Positions 11,078-47,028 of a stretch of 64,000 nt of DNA are shown here, piece after piece; the first letter of the stretch is position 1; each line of letters opens with the position of its first letter. The stretch covers positions 310,001-374,000 of IMG/VR virus record IMGVR_UViG_3300027899_000001. One strand, written 5' to 3'. Under the pieces are notes generated by a model. It searched no databases, was not told the DNA's origin, and was given only the letters and a program-made list of their open reading frames with translations. The position numbers and the translations under genes were made by a program.

Positions 11078-11301
11078 TCTTTATAGTACAAATATAATTA
11101 AAATATATGAATAAATCATTAAAATGTTGTTAAAAAATTGTTAATGACTATTATATTATATTTATTCATCCTGTAATTCCAAAGGCTTTAAGAAAATATA
11201 AAACACCGGCAATAATTAGTATAATTACTATTATGCCAAATAATTTAAAGCATCCGCCTAAACAAGAACATCCACTTTCCATATAATATAGTTTTAATTT
11301 G

Positions 11302-11375
11302 AGGCCACAATCGGGATCGAACCGACTTCTCTGCGTTACGAAGGCAGAATCCTATGCCATCTAGACGATGCGGCC
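11302..11375 (-). tRNA. trnT-CGT: tRNA-Thr(CGT)
   Basis: Cloverleaf; loop TT-CGT-AA with C31-C39 mismatch; U73 as in the other Thr tRNAs here. Confidence 0.7.
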
Positions 11376-11384
11376 ATTTTTCGG

Positions 11385-11443
11385 ACGGGGCCCGCCTCCC
11401 ATTTAGGTGCCACGATTTTCGTGTCTTTAATAACCTGCCCCGT
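11385..11443 (-). ncRNA. Unidentified GC-rich structured spacer RNA
   Basis: ACGGGGC/GCCCCGT closing stem, AGGT/ACCT and CACG/CGTG inner helices. Confidence 0.35.
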
Positions 11444-11450
11444 ATCGGCG

Positions 11451-11533
11451 CGGAGAGCAGAGTACTCGAAACTCAGTCCTTGTAGACCCACTCGCTTTCC
11501 AGACGGTGGCAGACCCTATCTGCGTTACTCTCC
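11451..11533 (-). tRNA. trnS-GGA: tRNA-Ser(GGA)
   Basis: Long V-arm cloverleaf, loop CT-GGA-AA, G73. Confidence 0.8.
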
Positions 11534-11608
11534 ATAATCTCTCAGTGTATACATCGTTTCAGTAATACACTCATCAATATTGTTCCAATTGATGTTGAGA
11601 GAAGTTTG

Positions 11609-11693
11609 CGGAGAGAGCGGGTAACGATCCCGCTTGAGTATTGCCCCAGCCTCAGTTTAGCAAACTGGCCTATTACCTTCCTAGCCTCTCTCC
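11609..11693 (-). tRNA. trnS-GCT: tRNA-Ser(GCT)
   Basis: Loop TT-GCT-AA, long V-arm, atypical T-loop. Confidence 0.75.
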
Positions 11694-11697
11694 AATT

Positions 11698-11967
11698 TTA
11701 TCTTAGAAGATTCTTAATTATCATTGTTTTTGAATCTTCTAAAACTTTTTTAGTAAGTTTTATTACTTCATCAGCTTCTCCTTGTGATTCTTTAAGAAGT
11801 TGTTTATATTTTTCTACAGATTCATTTAAAAAAGTAATGTAATTATTTTTAACTTTATCAAGTTCATCCATAGCTTTTATTTTATCTCTAAGAGCTTCAA
11901 TCAATTCATCTTTTCTTTTGAATTCTGCCAAAAGGCTTTGTGTTAAATCATTGTTTGTCGAACTCAT
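11698..11967 (-). CDS. Hypothetical coiled-coil protein
   Basis: ORF track, fills gap between tRNAs. Confidence 0.6.
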   Translation of the reverse strand: MSSTNNDLTQSLLAEFKRKDELIEALRDKIKAMDELDKVKNNYITFLNESVEKYKQLLKESQGEADEVIKLTKKVLEDSKTMIIKNLLR

Positions 11968-11989
11968 TGTATCATATATTAAATGTTTG

Positions 11990-12079
11990 CGGAGTATAAA
12001 GGAATCGAACCCTCGGCGAACTACTGAACGCCGGCCTAGTTTTCGAGACTAGTTGTGCACCCATTGCACTCTACACTCC
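11990..12079 (-). tRNA. trnS-CGA: tRNA-Ser(CGA)
   Basis: CTAGT-CTCGAAA-ACTAG anticodon arm, long V-arm. Confidence 0.85.
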
Positions 12080-12339
12080 TAAATTTTCTTTAAAGGAAAA
12101 TGAATTAAAATTTTATCTTCATCCACTTCATTTAAAGATTTTTCATCTTTATCTTCCTCATCGATTACATATGCATTGCTATAAGCAAATTTTATGTATT
12201 CCATAGAGTTTTCATATGTTTTTCCTTTCTTCTCTAAAAAGTCAAACATATCGGATATCATTGCTTCACTACTTTTGTAACTTACAATTTCAAGAGTAAC
12301 TCTACCCACTAAATTTTTTTCATCTACAAATATTCTCAT
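12079..12339 (-). CDS. Hypothetical protein
   Basis: ORF track. Confidence 0.55.
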   Translation of the reverse strand: MRIFVDEKNLVGRVTLEIVSYKSSEAMISDMFDFLEKKGKTYENSMEYIKFAYSNAYVIDEEDKDEKSLNEVDEDKILIHFPLKKI

Positions 12340-12360
12340 ATTCTTATATTAAAAAAGTTT

Positions 12361-12450
12361 TGGCGGATGAGGTGGGGTTCGAACCCACGGACCACTTACG
12401 CGATCATTAGTTTTCAAGACTAACGCCATAGACCACTCGGCCACCCATCC
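12361..12450 (-). tRNA. trnS-TGA: tRNA-Ser(TGA)
   Basis: Canonical class II cloverleaf with encoded CCA. Confidence 0.95.
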
Positions 12451-12456
12451 AATTTG

Positions 12457-12528
12457 AGCCGAAAAAGGGTTTCGAACCCCCAACCTATAGTTTACAAAAC
12501 TATTGCTCTACCATTGAGCTACTTCGGC
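12457..12528 (-). tRNA. trnT-TGT: tRNA-Thr(TGT)
   Basis: ATAGT-TTTGTAA-ACTAT. Confidence 0.9.
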
Positions 12529-12535
12529 GTTTTTG

Positions 12536-12608
12536 AGCCCCCATGAGAATTCGAATCCCAGTCTTCGGTGTACAAAACCGACATAATTACCATCTATACG
12601 ATGGAGGC
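12536..12608 (-). tRNA. trnT-TGT: tRNA-Thr(TGT), second divergent copy
   Basis: TCGGT-TTTGTAC-ACCGA. Confidence 0.8.
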
Positions 12609-12616
12609 ATTTTTTG

Positions 12617-12688
12617 AGCCCTTACGCAGCTTCGAACTGCGAGTTCTACGATACCAACGTAGTGTTTTTCCTATTGAACTATAAGGGC
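12617..12688 (-). tRNA. trnT-GGT: tRNA-Thr(GGT)
   Basis: CTACG-TTGGTAT-CGTAG. Confidence 0.85.
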
Positions 12689-13361: not shown

Positions 13362-13387
13362 AAAAAAGGGAGCTAAAAAGCTCCCTT
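13362..13387 (-). terminator. Intrinsic terminator (attenuator of tRNA array 1)
   Basis: AAGGGAGC-TTTTTA-GCTCCCTT followed by T-run. Confidence 0.85.
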
Positions 13388-13411
13388 AATTTATGATACA
13401 CGAGAGCATAT

Positions 13412-13471
13412 TTATTCCGTACCTGTTGTTGAACTGGTTATTGATATCGATATGTTATTAATTGCTTTCAT
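13412..13471 (-). promoter_or_regulatory. Leader peptide MKAINNISISITSSTTGTE (attenuator 1)
   Basis: 19-codon ORF rich in ATA/TCN/AGT/ACN directly before terminator. Confidence 0.75.
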
Positions 13472-13518
13472 TGTATATTATATATCATACTATATTTAAA
13501 GTTTTCGATTACTTAATG

Positions 13519-16268: not shown

Positions 16269-16319
16269 TATGTTATTTAATTAACTAGTATCTTTTTCAC
16301 ATTGACAATTTAAAAAGAG

Positions 16320-16390
16320 AGCGCATGATCAGAATCGAACTGACGTCGAAAGCTTGGAAGGCTCCCGCACTACCACTGTGCTACACGCGC
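16320..16390 (-). tRNA. trnG-TCC: tRNA-Gly(TCC)
   Basis: Loop CT-TCC-AA, U73. Confidence 0.85.
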
Positions 16391-16590
16391 TTGGTAATAT
16401 AATATCTAATTCTCCAGAATGCTCTTTTATACCAGGGAATAGATTTCCATTTATTATGATATTCAAACCATGTTTTTACTTGATCAAAAGAAAGAGTTTC
16501 AGCAGGTAAAGTATCAATACTTATTGGACCCCCTTCAGGTGTGGGAAATATAATTATTTCGCCTGTTTTTCTATCTTGTATTTCTAACAT
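16381..16590 (-). CDS. Hypothetical protein; stop lies inside tRNA-Gly 5' end
   Basis: ORF track. Confidence 0.5.
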   Translation of the reverse strand: MLEIQDRKTGEIIIFPTPEGGPISIDTLPAETLSFDQVKTWFEYHNKWKSIPWYKRAFWRIRYYITKRV

Positions 16591-16605
16591 AGTTTACTAT
16601 ATTTG

Positions 16606-16676
16606 AGCGCCACAGGGTAATCGAAACCCCATGTTCAGACTGGCAATCTGACGTAATACCTTTATACCAATGGCGC
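16606..16676 (-). tRNA. trnG-GCC: tRNA-Gly(GCC)
   Basis: TCAGA-TTGCCAG-TCTGA. Confidence 0.85.
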
Positions 16677-16679
16677 ATT

Positions 16680-17354
16680 TTACCAAAAAATAATTTCATA
16701 TATAATTAAAGGAAATTTTTCTTTAAATGCTATTTCTTTTAACTTTGTTTCATTTAATGTAACATTCCAAGAATTTTTTATTTCTACGACTTTATTATCA
16801 TTTATTAAAAAATCTGGTTGGTATGTTCTATTATTTCCCTTTTCGTCTTTATATTTAATTTTAAAATTTTCAGGTTCGTACGTAAATTTTAAAATTTCAT
16901 TGTTTTTATTTATATCATCAATATATATTTTTTCATATGAAGATCTAACATTAAATTGTTTTTTACCTGTATGTTTTTCTGAATAAACCTTAATAAGTTT
17001 TGTATTTTTAGGACTTTTTCCATACATTCCATTTTTTTCTCCTGAATTTTTTCCTAACATTTTTTTACTTATTGCTTTTCGTGCTTCAAGACTTATATTT
17101 TTTGAAGAACATGATCGTGAACAATATTTTTGATGTCTTTTATTCCAACGAATTTTAAATTTTTTTCCACATTTTTTACATATATTAACTACATCTGAAT
17201 GTGAATTTAATTTTCTTTTTTTACGTATTTTATCATTTATCAAAGAACGTTTTTCTTTTGTACTGAAACTTTTTGCGCATTTAGAAGAACAAAATCTTCC
17301 AGAACCATATAATCCATTGTGCTCTTTTTTACAAGTTTCACAAATATACTTCAT
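16680..17354 (-). CDS. Free-standing endonuclease, Cys-repeat DNA-binding region plus PD-(D/E)xK (TnsA-like) domain
   Basis: FCSSKCA, YCSRSC; RSSYE...YQPDFL...VEIK. Confidence 0.75.
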   Translation of the reverse strand: MKYICETCKKEHNGLYGSGRFCSSKCAKSFSTKEKRSLINDKIRKKRKLNSHSDVVNICKKCGKKFKIRWNKRHQKYCSRSCSSKNISLEARKAISKKMLGKNSGEKNGMYGKSPKNTKLIKVYSEKHTGKKQFNVRSSYEKIYIDDINKNNEILKFTYEPENFKIKYKDEKGNNRTYQPDFLINDNKVVEIKNSWNVTLNETKLKEIAFKEKFPLIIYEIIFW

Positions 17355-17409
17355 TGTTTTATTTTATATATTCATGAAATAATTTGAACTTGTGTCTTTA
17401 ACCTTGAGC

Positions 17410-17664
17410 TTAATATTTAGTACCACCTATCATTCCTCCGCCATATCGACGAAATTTATATGGGTGGTATGTAATATTCTTTTTATATTTTCTGTATGCT
17501 TTTCTCTTTGTCTTTTTGTTATGTTTAGAATGAAATTCTTTATTTCTTCCTAACTCTGTGTTTTCTAATAACATTAAGTTCTTTCTTTCATTATTAGAAC
17601 AATGTTTAGTTGAAGAACACCCTACTAGTAATAATATAAAGATAAGTATAAAAAGTTTTCGCAC
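17410..17664 (-). CDS. Putative lipoprotein
   Basis: LLVGC lipobox. Confidence 0.55.
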   Translation of the reverse strand: MRKLFILIFILLLVGCSSTKHCSNNERKNLMLLENTELGRNKEFHSKHNKKTKRKAYRKYKKNITYHPYKFRRYGGGMIGGTKY

Positions 17665-17674
17665 TATATAGATT

Positions 17675-17887
17675 TTATTTTAGTTGTTCTAGTATTTTTT
17701 CTATTTGTTTTTGTACATCATCAATTTCTTTTGATATACGTTCTAATTCAATTTGTTCTTCTGGCTCTGTTCTCCAACCATATAAATCTGCAAGTCTATT
17801 AGTTTCAAATATAAAGTTTTCTAATAACTTAGCTTTTAATTTAAGAAATCTCGCTAATGTTTCGTAATTAATAATCTTATCTTCCAT
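17675..17887 (-). CDS. Hypothetical protein
   Basis: ORF track. Confidence 0.55.
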   Translation of the reverse strand: MEDKIINYETLARFLKLKAKLLENFIFETNRLADLYGWRTEPEEQIELERISKEIDDVQKQIEKILEQLK

Positions 17888-17902
17888 ATATTTTTTATAT
17901 AT

Positions 17903-18208
17903 TCAAATCTTCCATTTTGTCTTTCGATTATGTTTCCACGTTCTATACATCCTTACTTGATGTTGCCAAATCAATTTAGATTTCCAATATCCTCTATACC
18001 CTCTGTTGTGTTTTTGATATTCTCCATATAATTCTGGATAAGGATCATCGTCTACTACTCTCAATATATGATATATTCGACGATTAGCTGTTGTTTTCAT
18101 TAATTTATCTCTTTTCATGGTACCATTGTTTTTTTCTTTTACTTTGGTCTTTCCATGAAGTAGAAAAATGTCTTCCCATCCATCTGTTACAACCTTCGTG
18201 AAGTCCAC
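17903..18208 (-). CDS. Small basic hypothetical protein
   Basis: ORF track; shares TTxNRRxY with next ORF. Confidence 0.45.
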   Translation of the reverse strand: MDFTKVVTDGWEDIFLLHGKTKVKEKNNGTMKRDKLMKTTANRRIYHILRVVDDDPYPELYGEYQKHNRGYRGYWKSKLIWQHQVRMYRTWKHNRKTKWKI

Positions 18209-18296
18209 AGAGATGACAAGAAGTTAATCTAAGAATTTGTATACGAGAAAGTCTATATACTCTTCTATTAGTTGTTGTTCTAAAATTGTCATTCAT
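18105..18296 (-). CDS. Small basic hypothetical protein
   Basis: ORF track. Confidence 0.5.
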   Translation of the reverse strand: MNDNFRTTTNRRVYRLSRIQILRLTSCHLCGLHEGCNRWMGRHFSTSWKDQSKRKKQWYHEKR

Positions 18297-18413
18297 AATC
18301 TTTAGGTTATTTTACCTAAAGACCATCATATGTTTTTTTCATATTGTTTATTTAATTGTGTAAATATAATAAAAATTTCTGATATATTAAAATCTTTATC
18401 TATATATTTTTTG

Positions 18414-18486
18414 TAACTCCACTGAGATTCGAACTCAGATCAAGAATTTAGGAAATTCTTATTCTAATCCATTGAAATATGGAGTC
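18414..18486 (-). tRNA. trnR-CCT: tRNA-Arg(CCT)
   Basis: AGAAT-TTCCTAA-ATTCT. Confidence 0.85.
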
Positions 18487-18487
18487 A

Positions 18488-19471
18488 TTAAAATTCAGGA
18501 CATGGAAGAGCTCTCATTCGTTGTTTTCCATTTCTTTCAAAAAATCTATTAAATTCATAGATAAATGAAATTTCATGAGCTCCAACTGTTGCTCTATTGA
18601 GACTAGAAATTGTAAAATCGTAACTATAGCCAACAAATATATTTTTTGTTTTTAATCCTGCTAAACCTATAACTGCATCTCCTGGTTGATTTGATAATCC
18701 TGGAATGCCTCTATACCAAAGTCCTAAAATAAGTGGAGGTCTTGCATAATAAACTCCTACATCTGCTTGATAAAACTTTCCTTGGGTTTGTAAATTAACT
18801 GCTAAAGAAACAACATCTTGTCGTTCTATTTTAAGTCTTTGTTTCTTTATTATTTGTATTCCTCCATATAAGTTTACCTTTACTGGAACTCTTGATTCAT
18901 CTCCATAAAAAGAAATTTTAGGAGTTAACATATGATCTACTGTTACTCCACTCCATATTCTATCATTATACGCTATTATCGATGAAGCAAAGTCTATACT
19001 TGCTGAATTATCAAAAGTTGGTGGAATAACTGGAGGAGTATTGTTTATATTACTATTAAATATAAGTTTGTTAATATCTAATCCTAAATATTGAAATTTG
19101 AAATTAACACCAGGCCTTACATGCCATGTATTATTAATTTTAATATCATAAGAATATAAAGCTCCTATTGTTGTATTACTTAAATCTCCTGATCCTGCTA
19201 CATCGTATGATGCAATTATTCCTATTCCTGAATTATATTGAGGTAACGCTTTATCAAATGAAACACTATAAGTGTTATAGATATTTGATATTCCAGGCCA
19301 CTGATTTCTATAATTCATTGTTAATCTATAATCTTCTGTAGCACCTGCAAAAGATGGCGCTAACCATAACTTGTTGGCATAAAATTGTGAATACGTTGGA
19401 TCTTGTGCAAAAGTATTTGAATAGATTACAAATAACAGAATAAATGAACATATGTATTTTACAATACGCAT
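18488..19471 (-). CDS. PorP/SprF family T9SS outer-membrane protein
   Basis: QDPTYSQFY...APSFAG...YRNQWPG...YSYDFTIS...HEISFIY. Confidence 0.9.
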   Translation of the reverse strand: MRIVKYICSFILLFVIYSNTFAQDPTYSQFYANKLWLAPSFAGATEDYRLTMNYRNQWPGISNIYNTYSVSFDKALPQYNSGIGIIASYDVAGSGDLSNTTIGALYSYDIKINNTWHVRPGVNFKFQYLGLDINKLIFNSNINNTPPVIPPTFDNSASIDFASSIIAYNDRIWSGVTVDHMLTPKISFYGDESRVPVKVNLYGGIQIIKKQRLKIERQDVVSLAVNLQTQGKFYQADVGVYYARPPLILGLWYRGIPGLSNQPGDAVIGLAGLKTKNIFVGYSYDFTISSLNRATVGAHEISFIYEFNRFFERNGKQRMRALPCPEF

Positions 19472-20085
19472 TTTATTATATTTAATATATTATCGTTATA
19501 TACTTCTAAATAATGTAATTCTATAATTTTCCATCCCTCGTTTTCAATTAAATTATGTCTATTTTGATAATAGGGTTTTAATGTTTTATTTTTATAATAA
19601 TGTTGATTGCCATTAACTTCTATTCCTAATTTTAATTCAGGAAACGCTATATCTATTGAAAAATATCTATTTGGAAATAATGGTTGATATTCTTCTTCGA
19701 ATGTTATCTTATTTTTCTTTAATATATCTTTTAAGTATTCACATGGTATCGAAATAAACTTTGTATTTTTTCTCCAGGGATGTTTTTCGGGGTTTTCTAA
19801 TAAATACTGTTTTCTTTTATTAGACATTTGAATTTTTGTTTTTTCACTGTGGGTTTTTCCTTTATATGAAGGAGAATGTACTTTAATTCTTTTTTCTTTA
19901 TATGATTTTGATAAAGTGTTTGCTTGTTTTTTTCTCTGCTCCGGTGTTATAGTAGATCTTACATAATTAAGGCCATTCACGTATATATTATATTTAGGAT
20001 TTAATTTACACCATCTACTATGATTAGCTTTTTGAGATATTGTTAAATTTTCAAATTTTTTATTACAGTATTTACAAGATGTCAT
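19459..20085 (-). CDS. Free-standing DUF559/Vsr-like endonuclease
   Basis: FSIDIAFPELKLGIEVNGNQHY. Confidence 0.75.
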   Translation of the reverse strand: MTSCKYCNKKFENLTISQKANHSRWCKLNPKYNIYVNGLNYVRSTITPEQRKKQANTLSKSYKEKRIKVHSPSYKGKTHSEKTKIQMSNKRKQYLLENPEKHPWRKNTKFISIPCEYLKDILKKNKITFEEEYQPLFPNRYFSIDIAFPELKLGIEVNGNQHYYKNKTLKPYYQNRHNLIENEGWKIIELHYLEVYNDNILNIIKCVL

Positions 20086-20133
20086 AGTTTATTATATATA
20101 TTCATGGATAAAATATGAGATTTATATATTTAG

Positions 20134-20208
20134 AGCCCTGGAAGGGATTCGAACCCTCATCGTTCCGTTACATTACTACAGCTTAGAAGACTGCTATGAT
20201 ACCAGGGC
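20134..20208 (-). tRNA. D-armless tRNA-like RNA, anticodon TCT (Arg-AGA?)
   Basis: Acceptor GCCCTGG/CCAGGGC, loop CT-TCT-AA right after acceptor, perfect T-arm. Confidence 0.6.
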
Positions 20209-20298
20209 AAATTTTGTATCATATGTGATACTTTGGAGTGAAAAACTACCATTAGTGTATCATATATAATTCATTAGTATCATAAAAGATACTTTTTG

Positions 20299-20373
20299 TA
20301 CGTCCCAAGGGATTCGAACCCTTAATCTCAAGTTTCGTAGACTTGTGCATTTATCCAGTTGTGCTAGGGACGT
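20299..20373 (-). tRNA. trnR-ACG: tRNA-Arg(ACG)
   Basis: CAAGT-CTACGAA-ACTTG. Confidence 0.9.
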
Positions 20374-20557
20374 ATTAATAATGTGAAAGTTTACAGTGAT
20401 TTTTTATATCCTGATAAATTCCAGATATAAAAAAATACATGAATAATGTTGGTGGTATAGTTATTCCTACAACGAAAATAAGAAACCAGAAAACTATTAT
20501 TATCATCAGAATTGCGAGTAATACGTTTATCATGGCAGTGTTTGTTTAATTATATAT

Positions 20558-21421
20558 TTATTTTTTTATTATCTTTAAAACTTGAATTATATTTCCTTTA
20601 CTATAATCAGTTATAAGTAATATGTATAAACCGGATTTATAATTTAACATATCTATTAATACTGTTTCGCTCATCATTTTTTCTTCATATAATAATGAAG
20701 CTTTTTGATCATATATTCTAAATACTATTCCTGTATTATCTTTTATTGATAAATTTAATTTATCAGTAACAGGATTAGGCCAAACATTAATATCAATTTT
20801 TATACTATCAACTGTAATAAATTCTTTAATAACAGGAATTAAAAGTAATTTTGTGCCATTTATTGTTTCAAATGTAACTTCATCTGACATTACATAATCT
20901 CTGCAATCTGCCTCTGTTATTTGGCCTTCGGTTAAAGAAAGAAATAAAGTTTTATTACTTCCTATTCCATTATAGATATTAAGCTTAAATTGAGTATCAA
21001 ATGTTGTAATAATAGGTTCAACAAATAAGTATTGTCCAGTAAATAAATCGCTCCCTAATTCAGCTTTTCTTAATGATGCATAATAAATCGTATCTACAGG
21101 ACCTTCATATTTGTATATAATTAAATTTGTATTTCCTGTAGTTTTAAATTCAAATGTTACTATATCATTTGGAAAACCAAAATTTATTATCTTAAAATCA
21201 TCTGGTTGTTTAAGACCATCCCAAACTCTCGCCGATAATAAAACCTTTGACCTGCAGATTATTCCTTGATTTTCATACCATGTACTATTTATTGTTCCTT
21301 CTGTTCCAAATCTTATTCTTCTAAAATTGGATTTATTACCTTTCAAAGAATCATATACAATATCTTGCGCAGATATTGATAAAGACAATAACCAAAAAAG
21401 AATAATAAGAAATACTTTCAC
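20558..21421 (-). CDS. Secreted protein with T9SS type-A C-terminal sorting domain
   Basis: Signal peptide; VWPNPVTDKL...IYDQKA...SGLYIL...KIIKK. Confidence 0.85.
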   Translation of the reverse strand: MKVFLIILFWLLSLSISAQDIVYDSLKGNKSNFRRIRFGTEGTINSTWYENQGIICRSKVLLSARVWDGLKQPDDFKIINFGFPNDIVTFEFKTTGNTNLIIYKYEGPVDTIYYASLRKAELGSDLFTGQYLFVEPIITTFDTQFKLNIYNGIGSNKTLFLSLTEGQITEADCRDYVMSDEVTFETINGTKLLLIPVIKEFITVDSIKIDINVWPNPVTDKLNLSIKDNTGIVFRIYDQKASLLYEEKMMSETVLIDMLNYKSGLYILLITDYSKGNIIQVLKIIKK

Positions 21422-21487
21422 ACATCGGAATAATTTTTAGTATATACTATATATTCCTATTTAAGTTTTCTTCCTAATAATGACACT

Positions 21488-21562
21488 GGGTGAAATATGG
21501 GATTCGAACCCATGCCTCATGATTCACAGTCATGCATGCTTACCACTAACACTAAAATCACC
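21488..21562 (-). tRNA. trnH-GTG: tRNA-His(GTG)
   Basis: CATGA-CTGTGAA-TCATG. Confidence 0.85.
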
Positions 21563-21742
21563 ATTTACTCTGTTTTTATAAAACGAATTTTGATTTCCTT
21601 TCCTTCTATATTAGATTTAAGATAAAGAAACATTTCTTCGCCTTCAATATTTTCATATACCATACTATTTTCAAAATTAAGATATGGTTTACCATCTACT
21701 TCTACAGCCGCTTTAATTTTTTCTTGTAATTTAACTTCCATA

Positions 21743-21976
21743 TTATTGTATCTGTATAAATTTTTCGTTTTCCATTCCTTTTCTTATCCATCTCATTAAA
21801 GTTATTGCTTTGAAAGTAGGATAAAGAAAAGTAGTTTTCCATTCATCTTCAGTAGAATCTATTTCTAATCGATAAACAGAATTTTCAACAACTATCGCAT
21901 AATATACTTTACCATCACATACGTGACTCATATGTGCTTCAGTTCCTTTAACTATTTCTTTTAATGTGTGTTTCAT
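21743..21976 (-). CDS. Hypothetical protein
   Basis: ORF track. Confidence 0.6.
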   Translation of the reverse strand: MKHTLKEIVKGTEAHMSHVCDGKVYYAIVVENSVYRLEIDSTEDEWKTTFLYPTFKAITLMRWIRKGMENEKFIQIQ

Positions 21977-21987
21977 ATTTTTATTTA

Positions 21988-22302
21988 TTAAAATAATTCA
22001 TTTCCTGTAAAGGGTATTAATAATTTAGGGCTAATATAATAAAAATTTCGTTTATAATCAGCATAATTTACTAAATTACATTGCCAATATATTTTTTCAG
22101 TTCTTCCAATTGGTTCAAGCCAATAATAATAAAATTGTTCATTGGTTAGTTCTATAGGAATCGATTGTTTAAAATGAGATTTTAATGGAAGAATAATATG
22201 TTCTTTTGTTAATTCTACATAATCTCCTCTTCCTCCATGAACTACTCTTTCATATCCTTTTGCGAAAAGAGTGCCATCTTTAAAATATAAATTCCTAATC
22301 AT
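21988..22302 (-). CDS. Hypothetical protein (start corrected to MIRNLY)
   Basis: The ORF-track N-terminus runs through tRNA-Met. Confidence 0.6.
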   Translation of the reverse strand: MIRNLYFKDGTLFAKGYERVVHGGRGDYVELTKEHIILPLKSHFKQSIPIELTNEQFYYYWLEPIGRTEKIYWQCNLVNYADYKRNFYYISPKLLIPFTGNELF

Positions 22303-22322
22303 ATGTATTATATGAAATTTTG

Positions 22323-22395
22323 TAGCGGGTACTGGTTTCGAACCTGCGACCTTTGGGTTATGACTCCAACGCTCTGCCAACTGAGCTAACCCGCC
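22323..22395 (-). tRNA. trnM-CAT: tRNA with CAT anticodon (elongator Met or Ile2)
   Basis: Canonical cloverleaf, loop GT-CAT-AA. Confidence 0.85.
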
Positions 22396-23116
22396 ATTTT
22401 ATAAACTTATTAAATTCTTTTTCAACAAACATTTTATCATATCTGCCCATATCTTTTATTATATAAGGAATGTAACCCATATCTTTAATTTGTTTAATTT
22501 TAATTTTATCTCTATTTTGAACTTGTTCTACCGAATGTTTTTTATTTATTTTTTCATAATGCCATTTTCCATTCCAAAGTACAGCAACTTTAATATCTTC
22601 TATAATTATATCTGCATCCCAACCATTAAACATTTGTTCATTTGTTAAAACTTTAATAAAATTTTGTATACATAAATTTGCAAAATATATTTCATTTTTA
22701 CTTCTTCTACTTTTAGATTGTAATTCTGCAGATTTTAAACCGCTTATACGATAAATATTTGATAAACATTCTTTTGAGCAACATTTTCTTCTTTTACGAT
22801 ATTCACATGTAAACTCCTTTCCACAGTTTTTACAAATACAAGAATAAATTTTCTTTTTTCGGTTTTTTCTTGCGCATGATACTGAACAACATATTTTATC
22901 TCTTCCATTCCATGGCACAATAAATATTTTTTTACATTGAGGGCATATTTTTTTAACTGCTGGATGCGCATTTTCATGAATAGCTTTACTTACTTTAGCA
23001 TTTATTTCTTTTCTTTTAGCTTTCGTACTAAATCCTCTTGCACATTTGCTTGAACAAAATCTTCCTGAACCGTATGTTCCTTGTTGTTCTTTTCCACAAT
23101 TTTCACAAATTTTCAT
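22358..23116 (-). CDS. Free-standing endonuclease (Cys repeats plus PD-(D/E)xK); 3' end overlaps tRNA-Met
   Basis: FCSSKCA; WDADII...WNGKWHY; C-terminus WRVSSVGRALES read from tRNA. Confidence 0.75.
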   Translation of the reverse strand: MKICENCGKEQQGTYGSGRFCSSKCARGFSTKAKRKEINAKVSKAIHENAHPAVKKICPQCKKIFIVPWNGRDKICCSVSCARKNRKKKIYSCICKNCGKEFTCEYRKRRKCCSKECLSNIYRISGLKSAELQSKSRRSKNEIYFANLCIQNFIKVLTNEQMFNGWDADIIIEDIKVAVLWNGKWHYEKINKKHSVEQVQNRDKIKIKQIKDMGYIPYIIKDMGRYDKMFVEKEFNKFIKWRVSSVGRALES

Positions 23117-23224
23117 TGTTTATTTATTATATGTATAAACAATATAAAAGTTTTGAACTTGTGCATTTGTAGTGGACACCGGTACTGTACTGAAGTGAAA
23201 CCAACGCACTCTTTGCATTTAATT

Positions 23225-23299
23225 TGGTGGCGGGAGGGGGAGTTGAACCCCCAACTAGAGCTTATGAAACTCTCGAGATGCCGATTTCTCTATCCCACA
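23225..23299 (-). tRNA. trnM-CAT: tRNA with CAT anticodon, 1:72 mismatch
   Basis: AGAGT-TTCATAA-GCTCT, encoded CCA. Confidence 0.75.
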
Positions 23300-23302
23300 G
23301 TG

Positions 23303-23387
23303 TGGAAGGTAAGGGATTCGAACCCATGTGAACTATTCGCCTCTTGCTTGTAAAGCAAGTGCTCTGAACCAGCTGAGCTAACCTTCC
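23303..23387 (-). tRNA. trnV-TAC: tRNA-Val(TAC) with long variable arm
   Basis: CTTGC-TTTACAA-GCAAG then AGGCGAATAGTTCAC extra arm. Confidence 0.8.
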
Positions 23388-23395
23388 ATAAAAAG

Positions 23396-23468
23396 TGATC
23401 CCGGAGGGGCTCGAACCCTCGACTCCAACATTAAAAGTGTTGTACTCTGCCAACTGAGTTACGAAATC
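23396..23468 (-). tRNA. trnK-TTT: tRNA-Lys(TTT)
   Basis: CAACA-CTTTTAA-TGTTG. Confidence 0.9.
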
Positions 23469-23470
23469 AG

Positions 23471-23550
23471 ATAGATAAGTAGGCAAACCGAATGTTCCCA
23501 ATGTAGGGAGGCTATATATGCCCTTTAAGCTCGAAACGGAACTTATCTAT
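23471..23550 (-). ncRNA. Unidentified 80-nt multibranch RNA
   Basis: 10-bp terminal stem ATAGATAAGT/ACTTATCTAT enclosing GGC/GCC and TCCC/GGGA hairpins. Confidence 0.35.
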
Positions 23551-23553
23551 TTG

Positions 23554-23632
23554 TGGGCAGAATGGGATTCGAACCCACATTTTCAACCAAATTACCTTGG
23601 TCGTGTGTATCAGACACGCTGGATATCTGTCC
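23554..23632 (-). tRNA. D-armless tRNA-like RNA, anticodon GAT (Ile)
   Basis: Acceptor GGACAGA/TCTGCCC; CGTGT-CTGATAC-ACACG; extra arm GACCAA-GGTAAT-TTGGTT; T-arm. Confidence 0.65.
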
Positions 23633-23641
23633 TAAAATTTG

Positions 23642-23726
23642 CGTTTGGTGAAGGATTCGAACCTTCGATCGGATTTCTCTCGACGGATTAACAGTCCGTT
23701 GTCGTGGGCCACTTGACTAACCAAAC
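23642..23726 (-). tRNA. trnN-GTT: tRNA-Asn(GTT) on Tyr-like class II body
   Basis: ACGGA-CTGTTAA-TCCGT, long V-arm, G73. Confidence 0.8.
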
Positions 23727-23734
23727 TTAATTTG

Positions 23735-23810
23735 CGGGCGATAAGGGATTCGAACCCTCCTGATCTCCGAAGTGACAGTCCGGCGTCCACGCCAAGCAGA
23801 CCCATCGCCC
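23735..23810 (-). tRNA. trnD-GTC: tRNA-Asp(GTC)
   Basis: CCGGA-CTGTCAC-TTCGG. Confidence 0.85.
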
Positions 23811-23918
23811 TGGTATAGTAAGACTTGGGATCTTACTATCTTTGACCTTTATTCAAGAACGCACTCTTTATAATTTCCCAAATCATGTGTTCCAGACTTT
23901 CGATTTAATAAAGGACTG

Positions 23919-23994
23919 TTCCCCTGATGGGAGTCGAACCCACATACAAACCCTCATTAAGAGTGAGGACCGGCGCCATTACGGATACAGAGGA
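23919..23994 (-). tRNA. trnK-CTT: tRNA-Lys(CTT)
   Basis: CCTCA-CTCTTAA-TGAGG. Confidence 0.8.
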
Positions 23995-24788
23995 GGATAT
24001 TTTTTATTCCAATTTTCTATTTTTTCTTGTAATTCTGTTAATGTCAAAGAACATTTTTTGTATTTACTTATATTATCATTATGTCTCATTAACTTACAAT
24101 TTGCAGGATGACTTATTAATTTAGGATCTACATTTTGTAAAAATCCTTCCTTTATAGAAAACATATGATCTCTACTTATGCCATTTAGATTATCTCCACG
24201 ATTTTTTGCTTTATACCATCCGTACTGTTCTACTAAAGAAAAATCAAATTCGTTAGGATATTCATTTAATGAAAAATTAAATTGACAAGCTAATCGATAT
24301 CTTTGATAATTTGTGTAATCTTTTATTAAATATTCATGTCTGCATTCTTTACAACAGTATTTTCTTATTTTTCCTTCTATTTTTTTATTACAGTTAATAC
24401 AAAAACTATATGTATCTTCTTTTAAATTTATTTTTCTATTTTTATTATTAACAAATCCTACTATTTCTCCTCTTCTAATTTTATCTTTAACAATTTTACT
24501 AAAATTCTTTTTTGATTCTTCTGTTCTTATATGTGTATTTGCACAAATTCTAGAACAATAATACTTTTCTTTTTTAGGTTTATCTGTATTACATTCTTTT
24601 ATTATTATTTCTTTATTACATTTACAACAATTTACATTAAATGAATTCCATTTATTTTCAAAATGTTCTTTACTTTTTTTTCGGGTTTCATCATTTTTAA
24701 AAAGATATCCTTTGTGTTCCCATCTATGATGATTTGCTTTTGCTTGAAAAGTTTCAAATTCTAAATTACATTCTCCACATTTATACAT
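23979..24788 (-). CDS. Free-standing HNH-type endonuclease; stop inside tRNA-Lys
   Basis: Cys repeats; ISRDHMFS...NCKLMRHNDNISK. Confidence 0.75.
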   Translation of the reverse strand: MYKCGECNLEFETFQAKANHHRWEHKGYLFKNDETRKKSKEHFENKWNSFNVNCCKCNKEIIIKECNTDKPKKEKYYCSRICANTHIRTEESKKNFSKIVKDKIRRGEIVGFVNNKNRKINLKEDTYSFCINCNKKIEGKIRKYCCKECRHEYLIKDYTNYQRYRLACQFNFSLNEYPNEFDFSLVEQYGWYKAKNRGDNLNGISRDHMFSIKEGFLQNVDPKLISHPANCKLMRHNDNISKYKKCSLTLTELQEKIENWNKKYPPLYP

Positions 24789-24858
24789 AATAGTTTTATT
24801 TTATATATTCATGTGGAGAACATAATTATTGAATTCGTGTGTTAAATTTTTGTTAAAG

Positions 24859-24931
24859 TGGAACCATCCGGCTTCGAACCGGAGACTGGTGCTTGCAGGG
24901 CACCTGTGTTTGCCAGCTATACCATGATCCC
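24859..24931 (-). tRNA. trnA-TGC: tRNA-Ala(TGC)
   Basis: G3:U70, GGTGC-CCTGCAA-GCACC. Confidence 0.9.
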
Positions 24932-24937
24932 TTTTTG

Positions 24938-25020
24938 CACGTAAGGTAGGATTCGAACCCACGAACTCTTTCGAGGCTGGTTTTGGAGACCAGTGCCTTT
25001 AACCACTCGGCAACTTACGC
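24938..25020 (-). tRNA. trnW-CCA: tRNA-Trp(CCA) with long variable arm
   Basis: CTGGT-CTCCAAA-ACCAG plus CTC-GAAA-GAG arm, Ser/Leu-type D-arm, G73. Confidence 0.8.
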
Positions 25021-25026
25021 ATTTTG

Positions 25027-25102
25027 CGATCCGTAGGGGTATCGAACCCCTTGTTTTACTTGGGTGACAGCCAAGTTCTTCATCCTCAAAGCCTAACGGA
25101 CC
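25027..25102 (-). tRNA. trnD-GTC: tRNA-Asp(GTC), second copy
   Basis: CTTGG-CTGTCAC-CCAAG. Confidence 0.75.
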
Positions 25103-25111
25103 ATTTAAATT

Positions 25112-25804
25112 TTAATTATTATTTTTAAAATATATTTGTTCATATTTTTTTATATCATTTAGAAATATAATTTCTACATTATTATAATGAGATAAAATAT
25201 ACTTCATTTTAATTTTATCTTTATTACTATACCAACCTTTTACTTCAAAAAATTTTTGTAAATTTGGACACCAGAAATCAGGAAAATATAAATGTTCTTT
25301 TTTATTATCATCAATCCAAATTAAATTTAAATTATCTTTATATGAAACAGGTTTTACCCAATCTTTATCTAGATAATTTAAAATTTCTGCAAATCGTTTT
25401 TCATATGTTCCTTGAACTTTAACTATAGTTCCATCTAATTTTTTAGTTTCGTACCATTTACATCTTCTACTGCCTCCACTAGCATGCTTACCCCCACCCC
25501 CTTTATTATTTTTAGAAATTTGTTCCTTTGCTATTTGTGTATGCTTATATAAACTTTTTCTACCTTTTATGGGTGAAATTTTACCTTTATTTGGATGCCA
25601 ATTTTTTCCTTTTTCTGTATGACAAGCCCATATATGAAATTTTACATTTTTAAATTCTTTATTACAATATGGACATTGTTTTATAAATTTTTCTTTTTTT
25701 ACTTTTACTTTTATTATTCCACATTTATCATAATGTTTTTTAAAATTTGATATACTAATTTCTTTGTTACATTTATCACAAACTTTTTTAGTTCTTGATT
25801 TCAT
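25112..25804 (-). CDS. Free-standing PD-(D/E)xK endonuclease (paralog of 50256..50921)
   Basis: VQGTYEKRFA...YFPDFWCPNLQKFFEVKG. Confidence 0.75.
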   Translation of the reverse strand: MKSRTKKVCDKCNKEISISNFKKHYDKCGIIKVKVKKEKFIKQCPYCNKEFKNVKFHIWACHTEKGKNWHPNKGKISPIKGRKSLYKHTQIAKEQISKNNKGGGGKHASGGSRRCKWYETKKLDGTIVKVQGTYEKRFAEILNYLDKDWVKPVSYKDNLNLIWIDDNKKEHLYFPDFWCPNLQKFFEVKGWYSNKDKIKMKYILSHYNNVEIIFLNDIKKYEQIYFKNNN

Positions 25805-25892
25805 ATGAATTATTTTTTATTTATTATATTCATATTAACTCTTTTAGTTTTGCTACTTTTAAAAGTAACTCCATTCCATTACTACTACTTAG

Positions 25893-25964
25893 TGCGGATA
25901 GAGGTAATCGAAACCTCATCTTAAGTTTGGAAGACTTGTACACTAGCCATTGTGCTATACCCGC
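25893..25964 (-). tRNA. trnG-TCC: tRNA-Gly(TCC), second copy
   Basis: CAAGT-CTTCCAA-ACTTA. Confidence 0.85.
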
Positions 25965-25969
25965 ATGAT

Positions 25970-26082
25970 ACTGAGAAAATTTAGAAGAATAAATTGCCGC
26001 GCCATTGCGGCTATTTCCCCTTATTATTATTTGGCGGGGAAATTCAGAATCGAACCGATGTAATTCTTACAGTTACTACAGT
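25970..26082 (-). ncRNA. YrlA-type Y RNA (Ro-binding stem plus permuted tRNA-like domain)
   Basis: ACTG-T-AG/CT-CAGT ends; T-arm TCGG-TTCGATT-CTGA; loop-closed acceptor TTTCCCC-GCCA..GGGGAAA; D-like arm GCCGC..GCGGC. Confidence 0.8.
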
Positions 26083-26087
26083 ATTTG

Positions 26088-26160
26088 TGACCCCACCCAG
26101 AGTCGAACTGGGACAACTTGCTTAAAAGGCAAGGATTCTATCCATTGAAATTATGAGGTC
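26088..26160 (-). tRNA. trnK-TTT: tRNA-Lys(TTT), second copy
   Basis: CTTGC-CTTTTAA-GCAAG. Confidence 0.85.
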
Positions 26161-26201
26161 AATTGCCAACATGTCAAAGATCGTTGTTCTAAGTAGAACG
26201 T

Positions 26202-26235
26202 AAAAAAGCGGGAACTTTTGAGGAACCCGCTTTTT
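26202..26235 (-). terminator. Intrinsic terminator (attenuator of tRNA array 2)
   Basis: AAAAAGCGGG...CCCGCTTTTTT. Confidence 0.8.
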
Positions 26236-26253
26236 AGATTATTATGATTGTCT

Positions 26254-26361
26254 TTATTTACCAATCAAATATATCATATATACTGCGGGCGTAAGTTTTC
26301 CTCTAATGCCATTATCATTAGCATTCCAGTTGTTCACCATATGTTTCGCCATGCGTATCAT
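26254..26361 (-). promoter_or_regulatory. Leader peptide MIRMAKHMVNNWNANDNGIRGKLTPAVYMIYLIGK (attenuator 2)
   Basis: 35-codon ORF upstream of terminator; composition mirrors array 2. Confidence 0.75.
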
Positions 26362-26566
26362 TTTCTGCGTTGTTTAATTTATTATTTTATTTATATATAT
26401 TAGCAAAGTTTTAATTTTTTACCACTAAATGCAAATTATTTATTTTTTTTCTTACTAATTTTATACATTGTAAATAGAAAAGTAAATGCTAACAAAATAA
26501 CTCCTAATTCAAATATAAATACTTTCCAAAATATTATAGTATCGTTCATAACATTTAATTTAGAGT

Positions 26567-45900: not shown

Positions 45901-45982
45901 TGGCCAAAAAGGGACTCGAACCCTTACGTCTTTCAACACATGCTTTTGAGGCATACGCGTCTACCAATTTCGCCATCTGGCC
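45901..45982 (-). tRNA. trnL-CAA: tRNA-Leu(CAA)
   Basis: Loop CT-CAA-AA, class II. Confidence 0.9.
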
Positions 45983-46281
45983 AGGCTAGCCTCCGCCGAT
46001 CTTTCATCAGTTTCTTTTGTTAAACCTTTTCTCCAATTTCTTTTTCCTACAAATCCGTCTATAGCTGGTTTTCCTTCTCTATGAATTAAACAGTGTAAAA
46101 AATGTGAATTTAAACTTTGATGATTATTGAATTCTTTTTCACATTCGCATCTATATAAATTTTCATTAATTTTATATTTTGATGGTTGTTTTTCTTTTTT
46201 AACATAGATTTTACAAAAAGTTTTATGCCCATTTATTCCTTGAGAACTTTCAAATTCTCTTCCACATTCACACTTATACAT
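45961..46281 (-). CDS. Truncated endonuclease-type Zn-finger protein; stop inside tRNA-Leu
   Basis: YKCECG..HxxxC repeats, WRKGLTKETDER; no nuclease domain. Confidence 0.55.
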   Translation of the reverse strand: MYKCECGREFESSQGINGHKTFCKIYVKKEKQPSKYKINENLYRCECEKEFNNHQSLNSHFLHCLIHREGKPAIDGFVGKRNWRKGLTKETDERSAEASLARWRNW

Positions 46282-46334
46282 TTTTAATTTATATATTCAT
46301 AAACAAATTTGGGAGAGTCAATGATTATTCTATG

Positions 46335-46422
46335 TGCTCTTGAAGGGGATCGAACCCTCAATCCTTTTTAAGGCATTAATTTTTGAGACTAACGTGTATT
46401 TCCTATTTTCCACCACAAGAGC
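46335..46422 (-). tRNA. trnL-CAA: tRNA-Leu(CAA), second copy
   Basis: TTAGT-CTCAAAA-ATTAA, class II. Confidence 0.8.
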
Positions 46423-47019: not shown

Positions 47020-47028
47020 ATTATATTT

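Follow-up and report, generated by a model that had tools for sequence, protein, structure and literature searches.

Phage tRNA arrays are usually discussed as static codon-usage or anti-defence cargo, and how they are regulated is essentially unknown. A minus-strand locus in a 405-kb phage (IMG/VR record IMGVR_UViG_3300027899_000001) raises the question of whether transcription of such an array can be gated by a short open reading frame (ORF) that samples the codons its tRNAs decode. The window analysed here comprises 64,000 nucleotides, positions 310,001 to 374,000 of that record, and contains three tRNA arrays. The second of these (array 2; 16319..26160) contains 17 tRNAs detected by ARAGORN and one weak Rfam tRNA at 20134-20208, interspersed with ORFs including an endonuclease-like one. 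Immediately upstream lies a 35-codon ORF with an ATG start (26361..26254), followed by an intrinsic terminator and, 40 nt later, tRNA-Lys, which starts at 26160.

The initial annotation proposed that the first 22 residues of this ORF use exactly the 11 amino acids supplied by the tRNAs at 16.3-26.2 kb, and that the leader can pair with the terminator. Both observations hold, with one reservation on the tRNA set. The first 22 residues contain M, I, R, A, K, H, V, N, W, D and G and none of S, T, L, P, Q, E, C, Y and F, whereas the remaining 13 residues include L, T, P and Y. ARAGORN finds Gly, Arg, His, Met (CAT x2), Val, Lys, Asn, Asp, Ala and Trp tRNAs in this interval, accounting for 10 of the 11 amino acids. 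However, no tRNA-Ile is annotated there, and decoding of Ile would require one of the two CAT tRNAs (22322, 23225) to be a lysidine tRNA-Ile2; the third CAT tRNA (42264) has initiator features. In the closest relative, the orthologous array has explicit Ile-GAT and Ile-TAT tRNAs. At the codon level, 25 of 35 codons are readable by array-2 tRNAs and 12 of 14 distinct tRNA species have a readable codon, though ATT and AGA are not readable and Lys-CTT and Arg-CCT have no codon in the leader.

This match is not due to chance. Against peptides drawn from the codon usage of the window, the probability that coverage and readable fraction are both as high is about 3e-4, and the binomial P for 21/22 in-set residues is 7.5e-5. 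Among 455 short ATG ORFs in all six frames of the window, this one ranks first for matching array 2, and its N-terminal in-set run of 22 compares with a next best of 11. Codons 2-22 (26358..26296) are hereafter termed the sensor part.

The leader is preceded by a promoter-like motif (motif A; AAAACTTT-N-TATATATAA) at 26391..26412, 29 nt upstream of the ATG. A pattern scan found three matches to this motif against 0.02 expected, and a looser form lies upstream of all three leaders in the window and of several ordinary genes, though its promoter function is inferred. The intrinsic terminator (26232..26206, with the T-run extending to 26202) comprises a 5' arm AAGCGGG (segment 3), a 3' arm CCCGCTT (segment 4) and T6 at 26207..26202. 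Within the ORF, codons 20-26 form a potential antiterminator 5' half (segment 2; 26284..26303; GAGGAA...CGCCCGCA). GAGGAA (26303..26298) and CCCGC (26289..26285) are complementary to GCGGG-TTCCTC (26230..26220), the 5' arm and loop of the terminator, whose 3' arm includes CCCGC (26212..26208), yielding 11 bp with an 8-nt bulge. This duplex has a predicted energy of -12.4 kcal/mol, against a shuffled mean of -7.3 (P=0.009).

Equivalent arrangements are found at the other two arrays of the window. Attenuator 1 (13366..13505, minus strand) contains motif A (13505..13478), a 19-codon ORF (13471..13412; MKAINNISISITSSTTGTE), segment 2 just after the stop codon (13408..13401) and a terminator (13387..13366). 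It lies directly upstream of array 1 (11301..12688, minus strand; Thr x4, Ser x3), and its eight Ser/Thr codons cover all 6 distinct anticodons of that array (P about 1e-4; antiterminator P=0.011). Attenuator 3 (51315..51552, minus strand) contains motif A (51552..51526), a 36-codon ORF (51478..51368), segment 2 (CGGAGGGA; 51393..51386) and a terminator (51339..51315). The following array 3 (41539..51128, minus strand) encodes Cys, Gln x2, Phe, Leu x5, Pro, Tyr, Glu, suppressor CTA and initiator Met tRNAs and ends before a terminator at 40825..40803. All 11 elongator tRNA species of array 3 have a readable codon in the leader (P about 5e-4), including one codon for each of the four Leu anticodons and both Gln anticodons; the corresponding P for the 12/14 coverage at array 2 is about 9e-3. 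Each of the three leaders (L1, L2 and L3) ranks first among the 455 short ORFs for its own array. Motif A, a short ORF, a terminator and tRNAs occur together at all three arrays, and they occur nowhere else in the window. However, at arrays 1 and 3 a second, strongly conserved promoter-like motif (motif B) lies between the terminator and the array, and these arrays could be transcribed without passing the attenuator.

Comparison with related phages indicates that leader composition does not drift independently of array content. Four syntenic phage contigs were found through the NAPRTase gene, and a profile search of 1.84 billion proteins found five more leader peptides. Motif A is present before every homologous leader. 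Nine array-2-type leaders from different phages, at 27-72% identity, share as little as 27-32% identity with only 4 invariant columns, and their reading frame is maintained with in-frame indels. Despite this divergence, 189 of 193 sensor residues remain inside the 11-residue set, compared with 42 of 84 in the tails, though four of these homologues have one Thr each. A homologue of attenuator 3 lies on the sequence designated L048 (L048:2159-2334). Every amino acid of the unit's tRNA set is present in its leader in all 7 evaluable units. The converse does not hold for L3-type leaders, which carry Thr, Ser, Ile, Lys, Asn and Val codons, and Tyr in relative R1, without matching tRNAs in the unit.

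Other routes to relatives were less productive. The gene just upstream of the leader (199 aa) retrieved only the same phage as close IMG/VR hits, with more distant homologues sitting in other contexts without tRNAs or on contigs that end too early, and anchors near arrays 3 and 1 (an SPFH protein and a 313-aa protein) gave no relatives. A degenerate leader pattern and the motif-B 22-mer found only the same phage in IMG/VR, plus one chance hit inside a coding region. A metagenome scan with NAPRTase returned 80 loci, none of which beyond R1 had arrays nearby, and nhmmer with the four leader regions found only the seeds. A pattern for the L3 terminator/antiterminator found only the same phage, missing R1 because its gap is one base over the limit applied, and two scans of genome contigs gave nothing or chance hits in GC-rich bacteria.

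The alternative pairing is also conserved. The duplex between segments 2 and 3 is better than dinucleotide shuffles in all 11 units tested (P 0.001-0.043; Fisher 4e-14), although many of the sequences are related and pooled P values therefore overstate independence; the independent designs are roughly L1/LH (LH being the relocated leader of relative R2 described below), L2, L3 and that of the Lak megaphages. Segments 2 and 4 change together with segment 3: GCGGG with CCCGC in the window and relative R6, GCGGG with CTCGC in R1, GCGAG with CTCGC in R4, AACGGGA with TCCTGTT or TCCCGTT in R2, and GGCGGA with TCCGCC in R3. These pairings are reported per sequence, given that a MAFFT alignment of the switch region was shifted by one base in three rows. 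An alternative view, that an ordinary terminator insulates the array from upstream transcription and that the ORF is fortuitous and untranslated, is very unlikely in light of these data. It draws some support from the bidirectional appearance of the terminator, with an A-run before and a T-run after, from the position of motif B after the terminator at arrays 1 and 3, and from the abundance of short ORFs in AT-rich DNA. However, it does not account for maintenance of the reading frame across nine homologues, the restriction of compositional constraint to the sensor part, the first rank of each leader for its own array, or the conserved and covarying antiterminator copy of the 3' arm.

The relative R2 shows that leaders track tRNA gene rearrangement. 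In this phage, the His and Ile tRNAs lie in a separate unit together with Thr/Ser tRNAs (His, Thr, Ile-TAT, Ser, Ser, Ile-GAT), preceded by a leader at L051:17617-17673 (LH; MKRTIIHISSSIISHKCG; L051 denotes the R2 sequence concerned) whose 12-residue core uses only T, I, H and S. Correspondingly, the R2 array-2-type leader has no His and its unit lacks a His tRNA. These findings bear on whether the signal would be classical amino acid starvation, with the phage coupling tRNA synthesis to the nutritional state of the host. Characterized leader-peptide attenuators, such as those of the trp, his, thr and ilv operons, generally respond to charged-tRNA supply, and nothing in the sequence distinguishes charging from abundance. 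However, making more tRNA does not relieve amino acid starvation, so the output would not correct the signal. In addition, the leaders match the anticodons actually encoded, for example four Leu codons for four Leu anticodons and six Ser/Thr codons for six anticodons, and follow tRNA gene relocation. This fits sensing of the tRNAs themselves, and a starvation signal acting through the same attenuator is considered possible but unlikely.

An unrelated leader is present in the Lak megaphages. This 42-codon ORF, also preceded by motif A, has 18 of 28 sensor residues in the set {H,P,R,G,C,M}, which has a background frequency of 0.14 (P 1e-9). It carries a copy of the terminator 3' arm inside the ORF, followed by a terminator and then, 14 nt on, by His, Pro, Arg, Arg, Gly, Cys and Met tRNAs, and the unit is conserved in Lak A, B and C. 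In contrast, the crAss-like phage cr106_1 has no such unit before its array. The recurrence of the composition-to-array rule in unrelated leaders (L1, L3, LH and Lak) also argues against a stand-alone small gene whose peptide, or terminated RNA of about 150 nt, acts in trans without controlling the downstream tRNAs, as for instance rnTrpL/peTrpL. The element does have its own promoter-like motif and terminator, the MIR..HM..NW..IRGK subfamily is fairly conserved at the peptide level, and attenuator-derived sRNAs and leader peptides with trans functions are known (PMC6614838, PMC7968998). However, distant homologues keep composition but not sequence, and the first tRNA starts only 14-48 nt after the T-run at L2-type, LH and Lak units. 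This explanation is very unlikely, though a trans role could exist in addition.

Together, these observations are best explained, with good though purely computational support, by ribosome-mediated transcription attenuation in which the regulated genes are tRNA genes. In the proposed mechanism, transcription starts at motif A and proceeds through the short ORF, whose first about 22 codons sample the amino acids, and largely the very codons, served by the downstream tRNAs. If all of these are decoded quickly, the ribosome would run over segment 2 to the stop codon, about 20 nt before the terminator, and segment 3 would pair with segment 4, terminating transcription at 26207..26202. If any sampled codon is decoded slowly because its tRNA is scarce, damaged or uncharged, the ribosome would stall upstream, leaving segment 2 free to pair with segment 3 as soon as it is made, such that the polymerase continues into tRNA-Lys and the rest of the array. 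The result would be negative feedback on decoding capacity, and the same design is proposed to govern arrays 1 and 3. Translation of the ORF, the direction of the switch, promoter identity, operon extent and the physiological signal are inferred, and there are no expression data of any kind. With respect to extent, no convincing terminator lies between 26.2 and 13.4 kb, including on the minus strand inside array 2, and the leader carries His, Arg-CGC and Gly-GGC codons whose only tRNAs lie at 16.6-21.5 kb.

Ribosome-masked folding partially supports this mechanism. For the L2 leader of the window, masking codons 2-8 drops the equilibrium terminator probability from 0.90 to 0.02-0.15, and for both L3 leaders a ribosome over segment 2 drops pre-emptive pairing of segment 3 from about 0.5-0.75 to 0.06. 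However, the folding model is only moderately discriminating for several units. In the long leaders (L2 and L3 types), segment 2 lies 5-10 codons before the stop, meaning a ribosome parked on the stop codon does not cover it, and a trp-like helix between segments 1 and 2 is not supported, with the best duplexes no better than shuffles (P 0.07-0.86); how fast translation prevents the antiterminator is not settled. Equilibrium folding with the ribosome at codons 32-36 of the window L2 leader predicts that segment 3 can still be captured, which would be compatible with a reverse logic wherein efficient translation permits read-through and stalling leads to termination. This reading is nevertheless very unlikely. 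In the short leaders (L1 and LH), segment 2 sits on or just after the stop codon and is masked by a terminating ribosome, giving the classical direction, while the stop codon is kept 19-24 nt before the terminator in L2-type units, leaving the hairpin free to form. Positive feedback on failure would also be maladaptive.

The design resembles the leader-peptide attenuators of enterobacterial amino acid operons (trpL, hisL, leuL, pheL, and the multi-amino-acid thrL with Thr+Ile and ilvL with Ile+Val+Leu) in combining a short ORF enriched in regulatory codons, an intrinsic terminator and a competing antiterminator that uses the 5' arm of the terminator. It differs from them in being encoded by a virus, in its output of tRNA genes rather than biosynthetic enzymes, in sampling up to 11 amino acids, mostly once to four times each, rather than runs of one to three, and in lacking a supported 1:2 helix, a feature not universal in the family. 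The pheM leader of pheST likewise appears to control a component of the translation apparatus for the amino acid it senses, though this is a cellular synthetase gene and a single amino acid. No Rfam leader family (Thr_leader, Phe_leader, His_leader, Leu_leader, Trp_leader or Bacteroid-trp) was hit at gathering thresholds, with only terminator-driven sub-threshold matches to Thr_leader (18.2 bits) and Phe_leader (25.1 bits) against gathering scores of 55. T-box riboswitches also read the state of a specific tRNA to switch a terminator/antiterminator, but bind uncharged tRNA directly through a specifier codon and the T-box sequence, with no ORF; no match to RF00230 was detected in the window at gathering thresholds, nor at E<=5 around the leaders. 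Ribosome stalling on short upstream ORFs also switches on antibiotic resistance genes (ermC, cat, bmrCD, vmlR; e.g. PMC4191407, PMC9226507), though there the stall is caused by a drug and a specific nascent peptide rather than, as proposed here, by codon supply. Promoter-level control of bacterial tRNA operons likewise adjusts tRNA synthesis to translational demand, but acts globally at initiation through ppGpp/DksA and involves no leader ORF. Searches of a non-exhaustive literature collection found no description of leader-peptide attenuation of tRNA genes or phage tRNA arrays.

If confirmed, this element would be the first attenuator known to control tRNA genes, the broadest multi-amino-acid leader sensor and a virus-encoded feedback loop on decoding capacity. 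It would make testable the long-standing question of when and why phages need their own tRNAs, explain why tRNAs are grouped as they are, and offer a compact natural part for sensing translation speed at chosen codons. A broader possibility, judged only slightly more likely than not, is that huge phages of Bacteroidota, in at least two unrelated lineages (the clade of this phage and the Lak megaphages), sort their tRNA genes into operons that each carry a leader sampling exactly the tRNAs of that operon. The arrays would then be a demand-driven replacement system, switching on whichever block is needed when host tRNAs are limiting, degraded during infection or cut by anticodon nucleases. Leader composition could also be used to read operon boundaries and the decoding identity of ambiguous tRNAs, such as CAT tRNAs acting as Ile. 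The presence of the element in Lak megaphages of the human and animal gut suggests that it is widespread.

Other features accompany these units. Stop-codon recoding is not evident in the window despite the CTA suppressor tRNA of array 3. Array 1 is preceded by two aberrant tRNA-like elements and an RNase P-like RNA, and a pattern for the aberrant element found only the window phage and R2. Between the terminator and the first tRNA of array 2 lies a conserved box of unknown function (GATCTTTGACATGTTGG; 26166..26182, minus strand), which is nearly identical in R1, R4 and R6, with related forms (RKWTCWTTGAMAT) following every terminator of the family.

The window is 28.9% G+C, carries almost all of its genes on the minus strand and is identical to part of the 405-kb IMG/VR contig 3300027899_000001. 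The encoded proteins include PorP/SprF, a CHU_C type IX secretion signal, NAPRTase and a TROVE/Ro protein, indicating that the contig represents a huge phage, probably of a Bacteroidota host. It has no close relative among GenBank phages. ARAGORN identified 39 tRNA genes in three groups, namely A1 at 11.3-12.7 kb (Thr, Ser), A2 at 16.3-26.2 kb (Gly, Arg, His, two CAT, Val, Lys, Asn, Asp, Ala, Trp) and A3 at 41.5-51.1 kb (Cys, Gln, Phe, Leu, Pro, Tyr, Glu, a CTA suppressor and one CAT with initiator features). The suppressor (43926-43999, minus strand; amber, called Pyl by ARAGORN) lies inside A3, though ORF lengths in the window give no sign of TAG recoding and the A3 leader contains no TAG. 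A weak tRNA at 20134-20208 (minus strand; Rfam 36.8 bits), missed by ARAGORN at default settings, has good acceptor and T arms but an irregular anticodon arm, leaving its identity unclear. ORFs are interspersed in A2 (25112-25804 on the minus strand, and 16680-17354, 19459-20085, 20558-21421, 22358-23116 and 23979-24788); the one tested matches phage endonuclease/HNH families in PHROGs, and they are likely homing endonucleases that fragment the array. A PorP/SprF type IX secretion homologue (18488-19471) also lies inside the array.

Upstream of A2, the minus strand at 26361..26254 is a 35-codon ORF. As reported in the initial annotation, its first 22 residues use M, I, R, A, K, H, V, N, W, D and G and nothing else. 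The last 13 include L, T, P and Y. Twenty-one bases after the stop codon comes a hairpin (26232..26206) with a T-run to 26202, and tRNA-Lys starts at 26160. The pairing proposed in the initial annotation is also correct, with GAGGAA (26303..26298) and CCCGC (26289..26285) inside the ORF being complementary to GCGGG-TTCCTC of the terminator's 5' arm and loop. However, no tRNA-Ile is annotated in A2, and Ile would have to be served by one of the two CAT tRNAs acting as tRNA-Ile2. The extent of the operon is supported only indirectly, in that no convincing terminator lies between 26.2 and 13.4 kb and the leader holds codons whose only tRNAs lie at 16.6-21.5 kb.

This composition is unlikely to have arisen by chance. 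At codon level, 25 of 35 codons are readable by A2 tRNAs and 12 of 14 distinct A2 tRNA species have a readable codon, with a joint probability of about 3e-4 against random peptides with the window's codon usage; the binomial probability of 21/22 in-set residues is 7.5e-5. The strongest control is empirical: among all 455 ATG ORFs of 15-45 codons in six frames, this ORF ranks first for A2, and its N-terminal in-set run of 22 compares with 11 for the runner-up. Nor is the amino-acid partition a base-composition effect, given Asp and His are in while Glu and Gln are out, which follows the arrays rather than the nucleotides.

The same construction precedes the other two arrays. Upstream of A1 lies a 19-codon ORF (13471..13412, MKAINNISISITSSTTGTE), whose eight Ser/Thr codons (TCG, TCA, ACC, AGT, TCA, ACA, ACA and ACG) cover all six distinct anticodons of A1 (P about 1e-4), followed by a terminator at 13387..13366. 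Upstream of A3 lies a 36-codon ORF (51478..51368), followed by a terminator at 51339..51315; this ORF contains one codon for each of the four Leu anticodons, both Gln codons, and Pro, Tyr, Phe, Glu and Cys codons, giving 11/11 elongator species (P about 5e-4). Each of these ORFs ranks first for its own array among the 455 short ORFs. All three leaders are preceded by the same promoter-like motif A, AAAACTTT-N-TATATAA, and within the window the combination of motif A, short ORF and terminator occurs only at these three places. A second promoter-like element, motif B, is a conserved element of about 60 nt ending in TATATTT(A/G)CA, which resembles the Bacteroidota -7 box, and is found on the minus strand at 13310-13331, 15662-15683, 26582-26603, 33698-33719 and 51178-51199. 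The four exact copies of its 22-nt core in the 405-kb contig all lie in the window, next to tRNA arrays or small membrane-protein ORFs. Motif B lies between terminator and array at A1 and A3, and upstream of the leader at A2; the attenuators may therefore modulate only one of two promoters' output. In addition, a conserved box of unknown function (GATCTTTGACATGTTGG and variants; RKWTCWTTGAMAT) lies 10-50 nt downstream of every attenuator terminator in the family, at 26166-26182 (minus strand), at approximately 13356-13344 and 51300-51288, and in the retrieved sequences L046, L051, L024, L136 and L140. At A1 and A3 it is the start of the extended motif B, whereas at A2 it lies 6 nt before tRNA-Lys.

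In every unit, a stretch inside or just after the ORF (segment 2) repeats the core of the terminator's 3' arm (segment 4) and can therefore pair with the 5' arm (segment 3) instead. The predicted duplexes are -9.5 to -17.9 kcal/mol, better than dinucleotide-preserving shuffles of the leader in 11 of 11 units (P 0.001-0.043). Two layouts exist. In the short leaders (L1, the window's A1 leader, and LH, a leader in the relative R2 discussed below), segment 2 lies on or 4 nt after the stop codon, so that a terminating ribosome masks it, as in the classical geometry. In the long leaders (types L2 and L3, named for the A2 and A3 leaders, and that of the Lak phages), segment 2 lies at codons 20-34, with 5-10 codons before the stop, and in the L2-type units the stop is held 19-24 nt before the terminator. 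A ribosome at the stop codon of a long leader does not cover segment 2, and no supported helix between segments 1 and 2 was found; the way in which rapid translation blocks the antiterminator is therefore inferred, with candidates being the timing of the ribosome over segment 2, or the ribosome acting as a wedge between segments 2 and 3. Folding with a 30-nt ribosome footprint masked is moderately supportive. For the window's L2, a ribosome with its A site at codons 2-8 lowers the equilibrium terminator probability from 0.90 to 0.02-0.15, while for both L3 leaders a ribosome over segment 2 lowers early capture of segment 3 from 0.5-0.75 to 0.06.

Homologous leaders are present in related phages. 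The NAPRTase gene, which lies 4.4 kb upstream of the A2 leader, retrieved three IMG/VR contigs with syntenic arrays that start with tRNA-Lys(TTT), designated R1 (74% identity), R2 (60%) and R3 (61%), each of which has motif A, a leader ORF and a terminator immediately before that tRNA. A profile of the four peptides, searched against 1.84 billion proteins, found five more leaders, of which three (R4-R6) have visible terminators and tRNA-Lys. The peptides share 72, 32 and 27% identity with the window's, with only four invariant columns and with indels in frame. Yet 189 of 193 sensor residues are in the 11-residue set, the four exceptions all being Thr, compared with 42 of 84 residues in the tails. 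The R1 array has Lys, Gly, CAT x2, Ala, Asp, Trp, Asn, Ile-GAT, Ile-TAT, Val, His, Arg-ACG and Arg-TCT, the same 11 amino acids, with explicit tRNAs for the ATT, ATA and AGA codons that are orphans in the window. Its tRNA-Asn(GTT) is interrupted by a 78-nt insertion in the anticodon loop, and a permuted tmRNA-like gene (RF04321, 65 bits) also lies inside the array (L046:10531-10681 and L046:11687-11986). CAT-anticodon tRNAs of 84-85 nt with a long variable arm, unusual for Met or Ile tRNAs, are conserved in R1 and R2 (L046:7770-7854, L051:13945-14028).

The switch covaries across these units, with the cores of segments 3, 2 and 4 changing together. In that order, they read GCGGG, CCCGC and CCCGC in the window and R6; GCGGG, CTCGC and CTCGC in R1; GCGAG, CTCGC and CTCGC in R4; AACGGGA, TCCTGTT and TCCCGTT in R2; and GGCGGA, TCCGCC and TCCGCC in R3. 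Both alternative helices are therefore maintained through G-C, G-U and A-U states.

In R2, the unit after the array-2-type leader contains Lys, Gly, Asp, Val, Trp, Ala, Asn, CAT, Arg-TCT, Gly-GCC and CAT, but no His, and the leader itself has no His. Two opposite-strand genes then intervene, after which comes a further attenuator (L051:17617-17739) whose leader (LH) is MKRTIIHISSSIISHKCG. It is followed by His, Thr, Ile-TAT, an aberrant tRNA-like element, Ser, Ser and Ile-GAT, after which protein genes resume. The 12-residue core of this leader uses only T, I, H and S, exactly the four amino acids of that unit (P 2e-5 for the whole sensor). Leader composition thus follows tRNA gene relocation, and in all seven units whose arrays could be seen, every amino acid of the unit's tRNA set occurs in its leader. 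The match is looser for L3-type leaders, in which 63% and 56% of sensor residues are in-set against 34% and 27% expected; these also carry Thr, Ser, Ile and other codons, and the R1 unit lacks a detectable Tyr tRNA.

The same design, with an unrelated sequence, was found by scanning Prevotella phage Lak-A1, which was reached through a tRNA BLAST hit (L147:22217-22345, minus strand; MK250015.1 at about 108.1 kb). The unit comprises a motif-A-like promoter, a 42-codon ORF whose residues 9-28 (GMHPVCGMVHMFPCGGGRPM) have 17 of 20 in {H,P,R,G,C,M}, an 8-nt copy of the terminator's 3' arm at codons 30-33, and a strong terminator, with tRNAs His, Pro, Arg, Arg, Gly, Cys and Met beginning 14 nt later. 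This is the only array within 140 kb. With that set at 0.14 in Lak proteins, 18 of 28 sensor residues gives P = 1e-9, and the antiterminator has P = 0.03. A crAss-like phage showed nothing similar. The Lak unit is conserved at 89-100% identity in Lak A, B and C genomes, with the same array (including Lak-B1, L151, and Lak-B7, L152).

The anatomy of these units is that of ribosome-mediated transcription attenuation, although those in the window do not belong to any Rfam leader family or to the T-box family. They differ from known leader-peptide attenuators in controlling tRNA genes, in sampling up to eleven amino acids roughly once to four times each, and in being viral. Full-text searches of an incomplete library found no report of leader-peptide attenuation of tRNA genes or phage tRNA arrays. 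The inference in the initial annotation that the A2 leader is a multi-amino-acid sensor is supported by statistics, homologues, covariation and an independent lineage, and it is likely that the element is a translation-sensing attenuator of tRNA transcription, although all evidence is computational and translation of the ORF and the direction of the switch are inferred. The most coherent logic is negative feedback on decoding capacity, in which slow decoding of any sampled codon stalls the ribosome, frees segment 2, prevents the terminator and sends RNA polymerase into the tRNA genes, with termination resuming once the tRNAs accumulate. Sensing based on tRNA charging cannot be excluded, but would not be corrected by the output.

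The region just upstream of A1 contains further RNA elements. Two tRNA-like elements (12780-12895 and 12697-12775, minus strand) have an acceptor stem and T-arm, the first ending in CCA, but aberrant middle parts, and are called by neither ARAGORN nor Rfam. The second is homologous to an element in R2 (L051:18795-18876) whose anticodon-like loop reads CTGATAT (GAT, Ile), and these elements may explain the four Ile codons in the A1 leader. An RNase P RNA-like element of about 180 nt (12912-13091, minus strand) sits behind motif B and a 55-aa membrane ORF, matching RF00373 (archaeal type) at 36.5-44.7 bits (gathering score 84; E 5e-9 to 8e-11). It keeps the GAGGAA-GUUC and AACAGAAUGGCGGCUAU conserved regions but lacks most of the specificity domain, and may be a miniaturised phage-encoded RNase P RNA.
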